This document shows positions 12,862-20,785 of a DNA stretch of 64,000 nt, in pieces (the first letter of the stretch is position 1; every line of letters starts with the position of its first letter). The DNA is taken from contig DF237400.1 of assembly GCA_000708835.1 (NCBI GenBank), positions 11,934 to 75,933 on the forward strand, given 5' to 3'. Source of the stretch: Klebsormidium nitens (taxonomy: Eukaryota > Plantae > Klebsormidiophyceae). A program made the translations under genes and the position numbers. The notes beneath the pieces are model-generated. The model saw nothing but the letters and a program-made list of their open reading frames with translations. It did not search any database and was not told the DNA's origin.

Positions 12862-15800
12862 TCAGGCCTGCCTTTCGGAAGGATTCGAAGCCTCGCATGC
12901 TGCCAGGTGCTGTTCAGCGGCCGCCGTGTCTCTTCGCAGGAGCCTCTCGTACTCTCGATGGCTGTGCGGGATCTCAGAGGCATCATCCGTGATCTCGCGG
13001 AAGTCTTTCCACGCCTCCTCCTGCAAGTTCCACAAGGGACGCGTGTCAGAACCGTAGCTTTTATTCAACGCAACAAATTTAGTGTACGGATGGAACGGTT
13101 CGTCGTTTCAATTCGTTGCAGTGCCTTAGCTCTTTCTTTTGTTGTCCGGGTGTGACCGTAGGATTGGGCCTTATCGTGTTCGTACCCCTGAAACGGTTGG
13201 ACCCTTGAGTAGAGACACTGCACTGAGACTGCGACCAGAAGACAAGAATTTGCACAGATTCTTTATAGCGGGTCGACAGCACAATCAGAACGTGCACGTA
13301 TCACTAACTGAACCCTCCCCTTCAGACTTGACCCATTTTGAAAGGGTCGAAGCAGGCGCCGCCTGCACGCGGCAAGCCATAACGGCGACTCTTCCAGTCT
13401 AGCGTGTCCTGGCAAGTCGCTCGAACAAAACCGCTTGCATCTCTTTGTCGACCACAGGCTAGCCCAATGAGTCCACGTCTGACGTCACCCCAGAAGCGAC
13501 AGTCATACAATCTCCTCCAACAAACGCTTCTCTGCTGACTTCCTTTTGCTGCTAAATTGAGCTACTCTTCCGTAAAGGGAGCGCTCACCCAGACTCTGCG
13601 CAGGCTGCGCAATGGCAGCACTTCCATGCGGGCAAGGAGGAGGGCGGCGTGCACGTACGTCCGAAAGAACAACACCTGAGCACGCAGCCACGAGTGACGT
13701 TAGCATGGGCATTTTGGATGCTACGAGTGACGCCAGCTCATCACAAAGGCTGTACGTTGTTTGGGACTGGACCACGACTTGTGGAGAAACGTGCGGAGCA
13801 GTACATTGAAGTGAAGAGCGCGGTGAAGGACGTGCACTTTGTGAGATTCTTCAGAGTTGCGTGCTTCCGTCTTTAGGCAAAGTGTCAGCGAAATCTGGGA
13901 GGCGGAGGTACTCGGGTCTGTTTGGAACCAGTACTTTCAAAAGCAATCCCTCCCCTGATTACCCCGTTCTTGCTTATCCAGGTTAGCTCCGCTTCCATCC
14001 AAGTGTTGCCTGCTTTTCTTTGATTCTGGGGTAATGCTTTAGTGGCTGCTGGAGTGCGGCTGTGCCGGCCTTGCTGACGTGCCTTGAACCTCCCGATGTA
14101 CACCGTATTGCGCTTTAAAGGCACGCGCACCGGTTGCCTTGCTGAAGGACTCCAAGCCACACGTCGTCGCAGCAAAGCTGGACGGATGAGCGGCGTGGCC
14201 GCACCTTGTCTCGTTCCCACCGCTTTTGGCGCTCCTTCAGCGGCAAATCCGCGTAGTTCGAGTACGTATACTCCGATGCCTGCACGCGGTGCAGGAGCAC
14301 GCACACCATCGTGGGGCCGCCGCGCGCGTCACCTGACGCGGCCGCCTCGGCGCTCGCGCGCACCAGGCGCTCGCCCACCGAGAGGTCGCCCTGCAGCAAA
14401 AACGAGTGGTCGAAGGGGTTCGGAAATCACGAAGTGCGGCAACAGCATGGGCCTGGATTGAGCAGCCTGTGAGGCGAATAGATAGATAAAAAACCGCCAG
14501 AAAGTTCATCAAAGACTTGATCAGCGGACAGGCTTTGAAAGACAAGACCTGTTACCTGTCCTACGCTCGAGCGAGGACCTTTTCTTGTGGTTTTCACGCA
14601 CTAGTGAGAAGGACCCGGTGGAAATGGCAACTTTCGAGGGGCTCAGTCGGGGCTGTGTCACCTGTCCGTTGTCGCCGATGAGCAGGAAGCGGTACTCGGG
14701 GTACAGCGCGGCATACTCCAGGAAGCGCTGGTGCTTGAAGTCCGCAACAGGCCCCCAAGCGCGAATCAGCGCCGCGCGATTTCCGCGAGCAGCGATGCCA
14801 CGTGACAGGGCCTGGAACCCGGCGGACAGGGACCTGGGGAACGCGGGAAAGGGGAGGAGTCGGGTTGAAAGAAAACGATGTATCAACGGTTGGTTGGTTC
14901 GAAGATATAGAGCAATCATTGTGGTGAAGATGGATGCATCTGAGATGGGAGCTTTCGTCTGCGAAATTACTTTTGCAGAGTAGAGTCCTTGGGGATGCAG
15001 CAAGTAGACCGCACTGATAATCGAAATTGGACTGTCAGTCATTCAAGAACCTACGCTTGGATTGCTCTGTCAGATCTCCTCTTGTTTCGTCTCGCCAAAT
15101 TGGAAAGAAGCATATCATACTGAGTAATGTGTCTTCACCCGAATCTTTCAGCCCAGCTCATGGGTCGATCGGCCGGCAGAGATGCCCGTGCCCCACGCCT
15201 GCGCCCAAGGTTTATGATGGTTCTGGCCCCGCAGAATCCTCCGGCTGCGCCTACGCGACTTAGGAGCTCCTTTGTACTTCCTTTTTTTTTGTTTACCAAA
15301 GCGTTCTTCCTCAGGGCCAAATCCGTGATCAAAAAAGTTCCCGAGCGCCTTACCCGGGCAGGACGGTGGGCATGACAGCGAAGCGCTTGGTTCGGTACAG
15401 ACCGTGCAGGTACCGGTAGATGGCCGCCTCCACCCAATCGCTGTACGCATGGGGCCGCGCCCACAAAAAGGCCACGCCGGGCAGGCCCGGGGGCGGCTGC
15501 AGCCAGGAATTTGCAACGTTCACCATACGACTGCAGCGCCTGATCGGTCGATTACTATAGCGAAGTCGGATATCCAGAGTGTGCTCTGCCCTTTCATGAT
15601 CGAGCGCTGCGCATCAGCATGAATCAAGCAAGGCGGGGGCGGTGGGAAAAACCGCAGACACGAATCCGCAACTTTGTGTCCACAGACGGATTGTCGAGAA
15701 TTAGAAAAGGCACATTGACGGGCTCAGCTGGCTGGAGATGCCACGTGTCCTCACCTCGTCAGCTAGTGCGGCAGTGCCTCCTTCCGAGCTGCCTGGAACG

Positions 15801-17899
15801 GCCGTTTCGCTGTGGGCGTGGGCCAGCTCCTCCAGAAGGGCGAACACGCCTACGAAGGCAAAAGGTGAACCCGCTATCAAAAAACCATACTGAGGACATA
15901 GTAAGGATATCCGCGAATTTTGTAGCGTCACCTCGACCCCTCCTGAGATCGAAAACCAATGACCCAAAAGGGCGAACAACTCTCCAAAGTCGAAATTGCA
16001 GCACGTGGCCTCACAAGAAGAGGGCAACCCAAGAGCAATCTCATTGACAGCAAGAAGAGAATCCCAATCAGACATGAGAGTCGGCTTTCGGCTCTGCTCA
16101 TCACAATCAGAGGCTACACTTGGTCCTCGTTCTTGTCCCTAGTGCAAGTCACTGCAACACGGTCCGTCTCGTCGCACTGTCCGTAAGCTGCTCGACTCTG
16201 TGTCGGTCATGAAAAGAAGCGGAGAGCAGCAGCAGCGGGCCGACCTGGGTACGGGCAGAATTGTGGGAAACGCGTATCGATGCCGGACAGGTTTTTGGCG
16301 TGGCTGCAGTAGAGCGTGTCGTCCAGGTCGCACACCACCTTCATGCCCAACGCGGCGCCCCCGCCCACGGCAACGGCCGCCTGGCAGCGTGCACCAGAGA
16401 AAGGGTCAGAGGAAATGTGTCCAGCAACGGTTCAACGAAAGTTTCAGTTCGATGTTTCGAGGATCTTGACACAAGGTCCACCCTAGAAGGAGCAGCCCCC
16501 AGCTGCTCCCATAGAATCGGAAGAGACGCAAGCGGCGTTTATGAAAATCAAAAAGGGTATAAAGAAGCTAACAGTCAGCCGCTGAGCATCCGACTGAACA
16601 ATCAAGGGCTCTCAGTCTAGCCCCGCGCCACTCTCGACCTTGTGAATGCATTATTGTAGCTGGCCCATGCCGCTTGCCGGATCGCTCCTCAAGAGTCTGG
16701 GGGCCCACCTGCGCTTCCCGCTGGATGTGCGCGAGTAGGGGCGACCGATCGGGGGACGGCAGGTCAGCGTATATCAGCTTGTGCAGATTGTGCACAGTGC
16801 CCCCCTCGTCCAGCAGCCGCTTCAGCAGCGCCAGGTCCGCCCCGCCAGAGGCCAGCAGCAGGGCGCGCACCAGCGCAGCGTACGGGGCGCGGAAAACCAG
16901 GCCCGAAGACTGGCACGCCGCAATGAGGGCCGCCCTGCACGAATAGTATACACAAGTGTCGACTCGTTTTTGATTCTTCTACAGACCGGCATTCTTTGTG
17001 TCCAGCAGAGAATGGAAAAGCAGGACAGCGGCAGTGTTTCAGTCGACTCCTTCTCAACGCTAAACAGCAGGGAGGGCACTCTAGGCAAAGCTAGATGCAG
17101 TTAGTCAAGTATCGTCACATCAATCAAGATTGGGAAACCCTTACAAATCTGAATGCAACTGCATAAGTTCAGATGGCAGTCCGCTGTCCATTGTGAAGGG
17201 CTCACCTGCTTGGGACGGTGAGGTCGCGCAGCCGCCCGTCGTGGCTACCTAGGGTCTCCAGTGTGGCCGCATTCAGCAGCCCCAGCAGCTCAGCTACCCT
17301 GTCCACACCCCCAGCAAACACGCGGTTCAGCTCCTCTGCATCAGCCTGCCCCACCGCTGACTCTAGCTGTGCTTGGATGTTTGCCAGACTAGTTGTGAAC
17401 GGCAGGGACGTGTACTTGAGAAGGGGGGCTAGCGTGCGCGCCCCCGAGACTATGGTGTAGATCGGGCTGTCTGGTATGTCGTCTTCAAAAGATGATGCTG
17501 TGGGCGGTGGCTGGGCGAACCGCCAGGCAAGGAAGCCGGTGGAGAGGCTAATGCTGGCAATTGCCGCCCACGTCTCCAGCAACCCCTATAGGGACAAGAG
17601 CCTCATCGTCAGTGCGGGTTCGCAGCGAGCATTGAGTTGGTCTAAAGAAGGCCGAAGTGTGCATTTTCGAACAACGCCGAACAATGCAAGTATGCTCAGG
17701 TCCTTCCATGAGGATCTTCCTACAATCGGTCAGATATCTAGTGTAGTTTCCTGAGCGCAACTCACAACAGGCAAACAACTCTGGAAGACTGATCCAGTTG
17801 GCGCCTCACCGGCTCTGTGCCTGCCCATCTGGAGACGCCCAGCCAGCCCAACCCCCCTGTGACAGCGGCTCCGAGAAGCCACCCCCTGCTGACGCCCAT
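12862..17899 (-). CDS. APP1-like (DUF2183) HAD-family phosphatidate-phosphatase-domain protein with hydrophobic N-terminus, 10 exons, about 557 aa
   Basis: Exons 17899-17810, 17585-17206, 16934-16709, 16380-16245, 15849-15755, 15496-15354, 14833-14662, 14390-14205, 13675-13589, 13020-12862, phase-consistent. Motifs KVVCDLDDTLYCS (DxDxT), YPGV, FLWARPH, PTVLPGSL, FxxYAALYPEYRFLLIGDNGQGD, FFRTYVHAA. Enzymatic activity is inferred only. Confidence 0.8.
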
Positions 17900-18025
17900 G
17901 GGGCCAGAGTGATCATGAGCTGCTTTGCGAACTACAGGGTGAGGGCAAAGACTAAAATACTCAAATCTTTACAAAGGTCCTCCCGAGTACGGGGGAATGC
18001 TGGACTAAGCCCATGTGTAGTGAGC

Positions 18026-18621
18026 CTACGGCCCTGCCTTAGCTGCTGTAGCTGAGGTTGGCAGCGGGGCATCGGGGACCCTGTCTCCCGTAGCGCTATT
18101 TCCTGGTGCTGGGCCCAGTGCTGGTGGTTGACCCTCAGCCTCAGATTCCTCAGAGTAGCCAGGGATTGTCTGCAGCAGAGAAAGATGTTTGGCGAAAAAC
18201 TTCAGATCAGAGGCAAGGATTCACAACGTAGAGTGTGGTTGCAAACAGGGGGGTCCTTTACAAGGATGCTGCGCAGGCCCTCAGACCCAGCGCCACAGTA
18301 GCTGTGCGCCGAGTGTGCCGGTCAGCCACCTTTGCTTGTGACAATCAGACACAGGAGTCACAGGGGATGGGCAGACCCACAGACAAGTAATCATTGGATC
18401 ACAAGCACAACATCTCTTCTGCCAGCATTTGAGTCTAAGTGCCAGCGAGGTGCTTCGTTTTAAACTGCAGCAAGCATGGTGGCGTGCGGAGCGGGCACGT
18501 GGCTGTGCATGCACGTGCTGCTCACCAGGTCTGGGCGGTACACGTTGTGCACCACAGCAGCGCCCGCCAGCAAGGAACCCATCGCAACAGCGTAGGACAC
18601 CAAGTACGTCCGCATGGCCAT
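18026..18621 (-). CDS. BRAWNIN/UQCC6 (C12orf73, DUF4516)-like mitochondrial microprotein, 2 exons, about 79 aa
   Basis: Exons 18621-18526 and 18169-18026 give MAMRTYLVSYAVAMGSLLAGAAVVHNVYRPDL|TIPGYSEE...AKAGP*. The spliced junction recreates GAxVVHxxYRPDLTIP, the motif I recall from human BRAWNIN (GAEVVHRYYRPDLTIP). An alternative 3' end via a possible intron 18029-17932 would stop at 17913. Confidence 0.82.
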
Positions 18622-18837
18622 TCTCCAAGGGCAACGGGCGTCATGCGGTAAGCAGCTGTGCAATGCAGGCAGCAGACAGAGCAGCTATGTACCTACCCAA
18701 CGTCACCTTACTATTACGGTAGACACACACACGAAGAGCGCCAGCTGCGCTGAGAGATGCTAGCAACTAGAACGACGGCGCGAGCGCACGGCATCGGAAT
18801 ATCTGAATGTGTAGGACTTGCGAGGCCAGCTGGCAGA

Positions 18838-18851
18838 GTGACACGTGTCAC
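18838..18851. promoter_or_regulatory. Perfect 14-bp palindrome GTGACACGTGTCAC containing a G-box (CACGTG) and ABRE-like ACGTGTC on both strands
   Basis: Read directly; lies about 220 bp upstream of the BRAWNIN-like ATG. Regulatory function is inferred only. Confidence 0.4.
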
Positions 18852-19191
18852 CTTCATGGAAAACGGGTTTGATTAAGCGTGCATATGCCCGGCCAAACTA
18901 TCACGTCATCATCTTGTGTTGAATGTGCTCATGAACCACTGTTTTTCCATAGGCCGTTGGATTGCACATGAGCTTCAAATGCTGATCGAACCGTCGCTGC
19001 TGCTATTGGATGCTTGGCAGCCCTCATGTATGTTACAAGAACCCCAGTAGTCTAATAGGGCGGGGCAACGTTCTGACTCGTTTGGATAATACTGCTCTGT
19101 TTTCCGCTGTACCTACAACAGTCGAAACACCTCAAATCCGAAGTGTTTGTGCGAGCGAAGAATTGTTAAAAAACCGACTTGCGTAACCAGC

Positions 19192-20785
19192 TTACTCTAA
19201 TGTCTCTATGCTTCGTACAGCCAACGCCCCGTCTTCACTTGGTCGTTGATGATCTCTTCTCGCTAAGAACGTCCTTGCTTGGTTGTCTACTTGCCACAAG
19301 CTGCACTGCCAAAGAGCCGCGCCCTTATGGTCCCTCCAGACGGGCTCCTCCCCGAGCTTAGCGGCCGTCGTGCATTCGTTTTGGACACACCGGACGATGC
19401 TCCGGTCCGGCTCGTAGTAATCAGGAACCGCAACACAGCCAAGCGCCACATAACCGGAGGGAGGTCGAGGCCGCCAGATGGTGACCGGTTCTCGGGCTCC
19501 GCTGTCCGTGTCGCGCCAGATCTATCAAATGAGCGTAGAACCACGTTATAAGATGTTGGGTCGCCCACACAAAATTTACGACAGTAATGTCGTTACTCGC
19601 TCTGAAGGGAATGTTTACGAGTCCGATGAGCAGCCTTGTAAGCCTTCATTGAAGTGGCTATGTGTTTGACTTCGATGAGCTTTCTTAACACGAGCTTGAG
19701 ACAAGTGCCCCAGGAAGACCAAGAAGCAGCCAGTACTGCGAATCAGATACACGAGATCAAGCTATCAACTATCTTGCGTTGAAATAATGGAGCCCGAGCG
19801 CGCAAATAAGCAGCCACCTGGCAAAACCAAGGACATCTCAGTGATAAACATCACAGCTTTATCTCAACTTGAATAGATACTTTGCTCCAGAAAGGAGCAT
19901 TCAACTAGCACGAGGCCTCTCAGAGCATGGCGCCACACGAGGTTATTCATCAGGTCCAGGTTCCCAGTCTGACATGCAACATGCAATCGGAAATGCCTGT
20001 TTTGAAAACCATACAAGGGTTTCGAGATGACGACCTACCAGATCGTATCCGACCGGTTGCGCGAACTGCCCGTTGGAGTCGTCCAGGTAGACCATGGCCA
20101 TCTTGGGGGCGTCGTATCCTCGCTGCACCACGTCGCCCAGAACCACGTACCTGCGCCAAAGCGGAGCGCTTGTGCCTGGCGACGACAGGAGGCAGTGGCA
20201 GAGGCAAACTACGGCCTGCCTCTGTTTGCAGGTTTTGGAATGAGCTAAATAATATCTGATCCCCATACTTGCGCGGCAAGTCAATAGAAGCTGACAACCA
20301 GCCACTGCGAGGCAGACTGGGAAGCAGCCCATTCGCATAAGTTGTGCTGCAGAAAGGCGTACTGGTGTGCCTGCGGCTTACCCGGCAGGCGCAATGGGCC
20401 GCCAGATGGACACAGTGTACCGCTTGCTCCAGGCAGCGCCCTGAAGCAGGAAAGCGGGGCGCGTAAGCAACAAGACAGGCTCCTTCTTCACATCACTGTC
20501 AAGGTTCTTTTTGAGGATTGCGCAGCGCTAAGATTTCTCCCAAGAACATTTGCAGTCGCCGTTTCGAGCTGGCAAGAGCATCTTAAGGCTACCGCGCCCA
20601 AAAAGTTGGCAGCTCACCTTGTCCCACCACATGAGCCGGAACTGGCGTACCAGCTTGCACGCCGGGGGGTCTGCGGCGGGCGCGCCCCCCTCCCCCAGGC
20701 CAGAGCGGCGGGACAGGTCGCCGGAGGCACGCCGCTTGTGCAGAGCCCCAGGGTTACTGCCAGTCCGCCGATGGCCAACCAGAGA
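19192..20785 (-). other. VPS13 C-terminal Vps62-like module beyond the ATG2_C/PH end
   Basis: FRLMWWDK|GAAWSKRYTVSIWRPIAPAG|YVVLGDVV..FAQPVGYDL|IWRDTDSGAREPVTIWRPRPPSGYVALGCVAV, joined by GT-AG introns in frame. Confidence 0.8.

Follow-up and report, generated by a model that had tools for sequence, protein, structure and literature searches.

In chlorophyte algae, bicistronic mRNAs possess short leaders, a weak start context at the first open reading frame (ORF1) and few AUGs before the second (ORF2), which is translated by leaky scanning rather than by reinitiation or from an internal ribosome entry site (IRES) (PMC11291117, PMC7896298). Such mRNAs are further recognized by full-length single transcripts in which both ORFs are exclusively or predominantly found, by colinearity of the ORFs in different species and by proteomic or ribosome-profiling evidence for both products (PMC7896298, PMC11291117). 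The median distances between the ORFs of these polycistrons are 212-260 nt (PMC7896298). Land plants and green algae alike have kept one bicistron led by a microprotein, CDC26/TTM3 (PMC11291117). In animals, the microprotein BRAWNIN, also called Sloth2 or C12orf73, is translated from a bicistron, and the human, zebrafish and fly proteins are located in the mitochondrial inner membrane and participate in the assembly of complex III; Arabidopsis has two unlinked BRAWNIN copies (PMC9681215). Here, we describe a locus of the streptophyte alga Klebsormidium nitens in which a BRAWNIN-like gene is situated immediately upstream of a gene encoding an APP1-like phosphatase. The locus lies in a window of 64,000 nt (GenBank contig DF237400.1, positions 11,934 to 75,933), to which all coordinates below refer, and its genes are read from the minus strand.

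A first-pass annotation, made from the letters of the window, had proposed that these two ORFs share a bicistronic transcript. We present evidence that both are genuine genes and that they form a very tight tandem peculiar to Klebsormidium. Spliced RNA contigs from four studies are unbroken over both ORFs, in keeping with the proposal, although contigs are no proof of one molecule. A true bicistronic BRAWNIN/APP1-like mRNA is thus a plausible but unproven reading, to which we would assign a likelihood just short of even. Our literature searches found no paper on nuclear polycistrons in Klebsormidium, and none on the KFL gene identifiers or on Klebsormidium long-read transcripts.

Results

RNA contigs are continuous across the BRAWNIN-like and APP1-like genes

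The GenBank record DF237400.1 has three genes in a row on this strand, for VPS13 (4592 aa), for a protein of 79 aa and for one of 557 aa in which APP1_cat is matched faintly. The last two, the BRAWNIN-like and APP1-like genes, are entered there as separate genes whose starts and stops are identical to those considered here. The coordinates on which the first-pass annotation had built its proposal all hold: the two ORFs are on the same strand, the BRAWNIN-like stop (18026) and the APP1-like ATG (17899) are separated by a 126-nt gap, and this gap contains an acceptor-like sequence at 17932 and a TGTAA at 17973-17969.

Twenty runs from eight studies contain approximately 40-58% of the sampled words of the stretch, and the Logan contigs of four runs from four studies (X1, X2, X3 and X8) were placed on the locus. 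The type of these runs was guessed to be RNA; eight canonical GT..AG joints, and a contig depth of zero within both the BRAWNIN intron and APP1-like introns 1-3, indicate that all four derive from spliced RNA. Each of the four runs yields a single spliced contig that comprises APP1-like exons, the entire gap, both BRAWNIN exons and the leader (1576 nt in the case of X1 record 3), and no splice joint is present within the gap in any of them. The BRAWNIN intron and the eight APP1-like introns are seen as GT..AG joints in the contigs, the last APP1-like junction being read from a loose end. The 5' ends of the contigs fall at approximately 18759 (X1), at 18748 (X2, X3) and at 18633 (X8). The coordinates of these features are collected in Table 1.

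The boundary between VPS13 and the BRAWNIN-like gene served as a control. VPS13 contigs terminate at 18909, 18925 or 18981, and positions 18760-18908, the approximately 150 nt between VPS13 and BRAWNIN, are without any listed contig piece in the four runs. Since this boundary is left uncovered in the same runs, these assemblies do not merge neighbouring genes by default and part them where coverage falls. The intergenic space here is itself very compact, with VPS13 contigs ending only about 150 nt from the 5' end of the BRAWNIN contigs.

The absence of coverage in the BRAWNIN intron and in APP1 intron 1 means that a BRAWNIN mRNA would have to end, and an APP1-like mRNA of its own would have to begin, within 18169-17810, and such ends must either overlap or be bridged by some molecules. 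The alternatives are therefore a genuinely bicistronic RNA, or same-strand overlapping mRNAs with an APP1-like promoter inside the BRAWNIN gene.

Table 1. Features of the BRAWNIN/APP1-like locus and of the adjacent VPS13 boundary (window coordinates)
Feature	Position	Strand	Remarks
VPS13 3' end	18909..19194	-	stop 19194-19192, 3' UTR to ~18909-18981; control boundary
BRAWNIN-like 5' leader	18622..18759	-	extent = reach of RNA contigs
BRAWNIN/UQCC6-like exon 1	18526..18621	-	32 codons, transmembrane helix and VVHNVYRPDL motif
BRAWNIN-like intron	18170..18525	-	356 nt, GT..AG; joint 18169/18526 in 4/4 runs
BRAWNIN-like exon 2	18026..18169	-	47 codons and TAG at 18028-18026
Inter-ORF gap	17900..18025	-	126 nt, contiguous RNA contig coverage
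APP1-like exon 1	17810..17899	-	30 codons, hydrophobic N-terminus; joint 17810/17585
APP1-like exons 2-9 and introns	13562..17585	-	contig joints and junction reading
APP1-like exons 2-4	17585-17206, 16934-16709, 16380-16245	-	exon 4 with CDLDDT motif
APP1-like exons 5-7	15849-15755, 15496-15354, 14833-14662	-	exon 7 with LIGDNGQ
APP1-like exons 8-9	14390-14205, 13675 to at least 13562	-	in-frame TAG at 13564-13562

The tandem arrangement is conserved in a Klebsormidium-like relative

A genomic contig of a Klebsormidium-like relative (L002; 71% DNA identity) retains the BRAWNIN gene, a gap of approximately 123 nt and APP1-like exon 1, and a soil-metagenome contig (L003; 84% identity) ends within the gap. 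BRAWNIN exon 1 is 98% identical in L002 and 94% identical in L003, and the position of the BRAWNIN stop is kept in both. The gap is 59% (L002) and 53% (L003) identical, and APP1 intron 1 is 56% identical. Because the middle of the gap is only about 50% identical, a conserved promoter or signal there is not suggested. The identity of the BRAWNIN intron, 68% in L002 and 83% in L003, exceeds that of the gap. In comparison with L003, this intron is as conserved as the coding sequence of exon 2 (82%), and this degree of conservation hints that regulatory sequence may reside inside it.

The upstream gene encodes a BRAWNIN-family microprotein

ORF1 belongs to a minus-strand, two-exon gene encoding a BRAWNIN/UQCC6-type microprotein of 79 aa. 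Exon 1 alone matches the Pfam family PF14990 (DUF4516) with 34 bits (E 2.3e-8, cutoff 27), and the full protein (P0001) does so with 43.3 bits (E 3e-11, cutoff 27). A word search with exon 2 found the hypothetical protein KFL_004510080 of Klebsormidium nitens (GenBank, 79 aa), which the query matches at 100% and which carries PF14990. A profile search recovered more than 100 relatives, including proteins of Closterium, Marchantia, Riccia, Physcomitrium and many angiosperms, and some of the angiosperm proteins are named 'protein BRAWNIN' by NCBI. In an alignment with homologues from Physcomitrium, Marchantia, Riccia, Closterium, Helianthus, Dillenia and Ochromonas, residues S16, L17, G20, A21, V23, V24, H25, N26, P30, D31, L32, T33 and P35 are invariant, as is the core SLLAGA-VVHN--(K/R)PDLT(I/L)P. 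The protein thus displays the features by which the microproteins of this family are recognized, being shorter than 100 aa and having one hydrophobic helix followed by VVHN..(K/R)PDLT(I/L)P. Judged by these similarities, the assignment of KFL_004510080 to the BRAWNIN/UQCC6/C12orf73 family is secure, and by analogy with the animal work a role in complex III assembly would be predicted for it. A search of solved structures with P0001 gave zero matches.

The context of the BRAWNIN-like ATG (18621) is GAGAATGG, in which position -3 is A and position +4 is G, a strong context when graded by the general eukaryotic rule rather than by a K. nitens consensus. The leader carries an out-of-frame upstream ATG (uATG) in weak context at 18644, which is kept in both L002 and L003; a second uATG, at 17916 in the gap, is kept in L002. 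Both start codons of the locus are in fact preceded by an out-of-frame, weak-context uATG within a common CATGA motif, 23 nt upstream in the case of 18644 and 17916 lying 17 nt upstream of its own start. These uATGs may have a role in translation or may be promoter-proximal elements.

A further observation was made on a Physcomitrium RNA contig (L011), in which the BRAWNIN transcript has a tail (225-1161) that extends approximately 940 nt past the stop. An ORF at 928-1161 runs off the end of this contig and lacks a Pfam match, and the tail is probably a long 3' UTR.

The downstream gene encodes a probable APP1-like HAD phosphatase

The APP1-like ATG at 17899, which has C at -3 and G at +4, coincides with the start of the GenBank coding sequence, and no in-frame ATG is present upstream of it. 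Of the 14 substitutions that distinguish exon 1 of L002 from that of K. nitens, 10 are synonymous in the frame of this ATG, and the start is therefore real.

Searches with the APP1-like protein were run exon by exon. Exon 7 is the one exon that matched APP1_cat (PF09949), and it did so weakly (16.2 bits, against a cutoff of 27.1), and the precomputed APP1_cat match of the 557-aa GenBank model is marked 'faint'. Two relatives of full length, P0018 from [Myrmecia] bisecta and P0019 from Copromyxa protea, were detected by a large protein search with exon 7; the 557-aa model of K. nitens itself was not among the matches of this search. The APP1_cat cutoff is passed by P0019 (32.6 bits) and by a fragment, P0022 (36.6 bits), and is failed by P0018 (23.3 bits). 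Both P0018 and P0019 are colinear with APP1-like exons 3, 4, 6 or 7, and 9. Phosphatases of the HAD type are defined by a DxDxT motif and a downstream GDxGQ motif. Exon 4 contains a DxDxT motif, KVVCDLDDTLYCS, that aligns to SDIDDT of the relatives, and exons 7 and 8 carry LLIGDNGQ|GD, which aligns to their GDNGQ. Exons 1-2 are lineage-specific. As read from these motifs and relatives, ORF2 appears to encode an APP1_cat-type HAD phosphatase, the term APP1-like denoting fold and family and not function. Both ORFs are real, conserved genes.

The GenBank APP1-like model, whose coding sequence ends at 12862, conflicts with the RNA contigs over 12862-14204. The contigs splice 14205 to 13675 and continue for 37 codons to the in-frame TAG at 13564-13562, giving a product of 513 aa if no further splice follows exon 9; a GTGAGC at approximately 13588 could be a further donor in this exon. 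Exon 9, from 13675, aligns to the Myrmecia bisecta homologue. Low-depth unspliced contigs are present over APP1-like introns 6 (14805-15381), 4 (15822-16273) and 8 (13700-14188), at approximately 5-15% of the depth of the spliced contigs, and may reflect intron retention or pre-mRNA. They cover neither the BRAWNIN intron nor APP1-like introns 1-3. In the unspliced intron-6 contigs a T run at 15281 is longer than in the genome, by one T in X8 and by two T in X1.

Sequence elements of the 126-nt gap

The gap holds ATGs at 18014 and 17916. A pyrimidine tract and TAG occupy 17949-17932, forming the acceptor-like sequence TTTGCCCTCACCCTGTAG that ends at 17932, and this tract with its TAG is common to K. 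nitens and L002. A CCCCC-type motif is located at 17996-17992. No Rfam family matched in the gap or in the BRAWNIN intron; a scan for promoters and terminators of bacterial type is uninformative for a eukaryote. Readthrough fusion of the two ORFs, which share a common frame (129 nt from TAG to ATG), was rejected as there are three in-frame stops in the gap.

In Klebsormidium expressed sequence tags (ESTs), neither UGUAA nor AAUAAA is found as a positioned signal, and C-rich words are enriched before the cleavage sites (PMC1868727). The TGTAA in the gap had been raised in the first-pass annotation as a caveat, being the poly(A) signal of chlorophytes; in view of the EST data it is irrelevant here, and we rejected it as a poly(A) signal. 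A 19-nt block that immediately follows the BRAWNIN stop, TAGGCTCACTACACAT (18028-18010, minus strand), has hardly changed among three species (79-84% identity), and the 60 nt downstream of it are only about 50% identical. The block may be a 3'-end or regulatory element.

Discussion

The reading that we favour is that the two genes form a single transcription unit, which would start approximately 140 nt upstream of the BRAWNIN ATG, near 18750. Its BRAWNIN intron and APP1-like introns would be spliced out and the 126-nt gap retained unspliced, leaving a structurally bicistronic mRNA. With its strong start context, BRAWNIN would be made by ordinary cap-dependent scanning. Ribosomes would arrive at the APP1-like ORF only inefficiently, whether they reinitiate after the 79 codons of ORF1 or, rarely, scan leakily past the seven ATGs that precede it (18644, 18621, 18615, 18582, 18072, 18014 and 17916). 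In favour of one unit, 126 nt is too short for a promoter flanked by a 3' UTR on one side and a 5' UTR on the other, unless these overlap (for comparison, the 3' UTR of VPS13 alone is approximately 270 nt), and both the arrangement and the length of the gap are kept in L002. The continuous contigs, the uncovered VPS13/BRAWNIN boundary, the poorly conserved middle of the gap, the inter-ORF distances of chlorophyte polycistrons and the existence of bicistrons with a leading microprotein in the plant lineage and with BRAWNIN in animals point in the same direction.

Several observations weigh against this reading. The contigs prove neither single molecules nor starts, ends or local depth, and an identical contig would result from readthrough of a few percent or from a 31-nt overlap of two mRNAs. 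The BRAWNIN-to-APP1 depth ratio, back-calculated from contig mean depths, ranges from approximately 0.5 to 2.3 across runs, a roughly four-fold spread; since it is as variable as that of the unrelated VPS13, depth lends no support to co-regulation, and we do not rely on contig mean depth to judge co-expression. The strong start context of ORF1 runs counter to what has been reported for algal bicistrons, and ATGs are not depleted: the two pieces examined contain 4 and 3, and shuffled sequence averages 2.8 and 3.2, about six in all. With the strong ORF1 context and the undepleted AUGs, the chlorophyte signature of leaky scanning is missing, and a bicistron here would not be of the chlorophyte type (PMC11291117). 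Moreover, the frame opened by the uATG at 17916 overlaps the ORF2 start, and the fold of the gap is no better than that of shuffled sequence (RNA fold z = -0.01), with no IRES-like structure. An ORF1 stop followed by eight exon junctions should constitute a classical trigger of nonsense-mediated decay (NMD). Finally, the pair is unlinked elsewhere: the gene next to BRAWNIN has the opposite orientation in Closterium, as it does in Marchantia and Physcomitrium, where it is also more than 5 kb away; the BRAWNIN ORF of a moss-like RNA contig is followed by 480 nt without an APP1-like ORF; and in the chlorophyte Myrmecia bisecta nothing BRAWNIN-like was found up to 8 kb upstream of the APP1-like gene, in a search whose positive control, on the K. 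nitens window, worked. Synteny of the pair, which the first-pass annotation had offered as a check, thus extends to the Klebsormidium-like L002 but not to these other lineages, and the juxtaposition is therefore restricted to the Klebsormidium lineage.

In a rival explanation, the locus produces two separate monocistronic mRNAs that overlap or abut, merged by the assembler through at least 31 shared nt or through minor readthrough. We regard this as a serious possibility, only slightly less likely than a bicistronic mRNA. The BRAWNIN poly(A) site would then be in the gap or in APP1 exon 1, the APP1-like promoter in the BRAWNIN intron or exon 2, and the capped APP1-like 5' end within BRAWNIN exon 2 or the gap. 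A contig over two genes does not show one transcript, and the separate annotation of the genes and their lack of linkage in other lineages agree with independent expression. The strong ORF1 start, the seven upstream AUGs and the expected liability to NMD speak for a need of the APP1-like protein for an mRNA of its own. The BRAWNIN intron is better conserved than either the gap or APP1 intron 1, which fits regulatory content; the conserved pyrimidine tract, 35-50 nt upstream of the APP1 start codon, may represent the Y-patch of a core promoter and not an acceptor; and motifs of the CCCCC type, one of which is found in the gap, are enriched before Klebsormidium cleavage sites (PMC1868727). Set against this, two mRNAs would require a promoter within a transcribed 730-nt gene, a 3' UTR of less than approximately 200 nt and same-strand overlap. 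There is no break in coverage between the genes in the four runs, though the same assemblies break at VPS13/BRAWNIN, and the BRAWNIN intron has no contig cover, so that no transcript starts there.

A common promoter combined with alternative processing would also account for both products, with a short BRAWNIN mRNA made by proximal polyadenylation and a minor isoform spliced to the conserved CCCTGTAG acceptor at 17932, in which the loss of part of the upstream ORF would favour APP1-like translation. The pyrimidine tract and TAG are indeed kept between K. nitens and L002, and rare variants are dropped from Logan contigs, so that a minor isoform could escape detection. However, none of the four runs has a joint that ends at 17932. 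This holds also for the splice from 18029 that the first-pass annotation had put forward, across which the gap is contiguous in the contigs of these runs, and its donor CC|GTAGGC reads CC|ATAGGC in L002, having lost the GT. Splicing of the BRAWNIN exon 1 donor to 17932 instead would read in the frame of the uATG at 17916 and not in the APP1 frame, and alternative processing is on balance improbable. Least credible, and in our judgement very improbable indeed, is that the bridging RNA is a mere by-product of transcriptional readthrough, an NMD substrate with no role in making APP1-like protein. There is precedent in the 271 such loci of Arabidopsis, where translation of the second ORF is rare and the RNAs are targeted by NMD (PMC9768141), a precedent that also tells against efficient use of ORF2 in a bicistron, and the restriction of the juxtaposition to one lineage is in accord with it. 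Nevertheless, the intergenic splicing typical of the Arabidopsis readthrough RNAs is not seen at the K. nitens locus, and this explanation overlaps with that of separate mRNAs and predicts a low coverage of the gap, a quantity that contigs cannot measure.

Should the bicistronic reading be correct, the locus would represent a young, lineage-specific bicistron of a streptophyte alga, from which it could be learned how two unrelated genes come to share an mRNA and whether a second cistron can be translated by rules other than leaky scanning. A specific version of it, in which a pair of recent origin expresses ORF2 through reinitiation or another non-leaky route from an mRNA that escapes NMD despite eight downstream junctions, seems to us unlikely; if true, it would be a type of bicistron mechanistically distinct from the leaky-scanning cases of chlorophytes and Drosophila. 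If the bicistron is not real, the locus is a tandem of two annotated genes that are unusually close together and overlap in their transcripts, and matters mainly for annotation. Annotation gains in either case from the assignment of KFL_004510080 to the BRAWNIN family and from the corrected exons of the APP1-like gene.

Compared with the polycistrons of Chlamydomonas, Chromochloris and Auxenochlorella, the K. nitens locus has a similar layout: a short ORF1 for a small protein is just upstream of a larger same-strand ORF2, introns are present in both ORFs, and the inter-ORF region is unspliced and without IRES-like structure. It differs in that its ORF1 context is strong, seven AUGs precede ORF2 and the host is a streptophyte; its gap of 126 nt is shorter than the chlorophyte medians of 212-260 nt, and its leader of approximately 140 nt is longer than their medians of 54-83 nt. 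The chlorophyte polycistrons have long-read, ribosome or peptide support, whereas the K. nitens pair is known from contigs. In the sloth1/sloth2 (SMIM4/BRAWNIN) bicistron of Drosophila, as in the candidate two-ORF mRNA described here, a BRAWNIN-family microprotein is one of the products (PMC9681215). The fly BRAWNIN, however, is downstream, 5 nt from a paralogue and functional partner, and is reached by leaky scanning past a weak ORF1 (PMC9681215); in K. nitens, BRAWNIN comes first, with a strong start context, and is paired with an unrelated enzyme. The readthrough polycistrons of Arabidopsis likewise consist of tandem same-strand genes bridged by RNA, and poor translation of ORF2 and sensitivity to NMD would be expected in K. 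nitens as well (PMC9768141). Many of those RNAs need intergenic splicing (PMC9768141), which is not seen here, where the gap is far too short for two independent ends. The conservation of CDC26/TTM3 in land plants and green algae (PMC11291117) means that the first-pass annotation overstated the case in presenting this locus as an extension of bicistrons to streptophytes. CDC26/TTM3 is anciently conserved and experimentally shown, its proteins are unrelated to those studied here, and the BRAWNIN/APP1-like pairing is by comparison confined to Klebsormidium and unproven. What the two have in common is a streptophyte lineage and a small protein placed before a phosphatase, for in CDC26/TTM3 a microprotein of approximately 65 aa is upstream of a phosphatase ORF and NMD acts on the mRNA (PMC11291117, PMC9768141).

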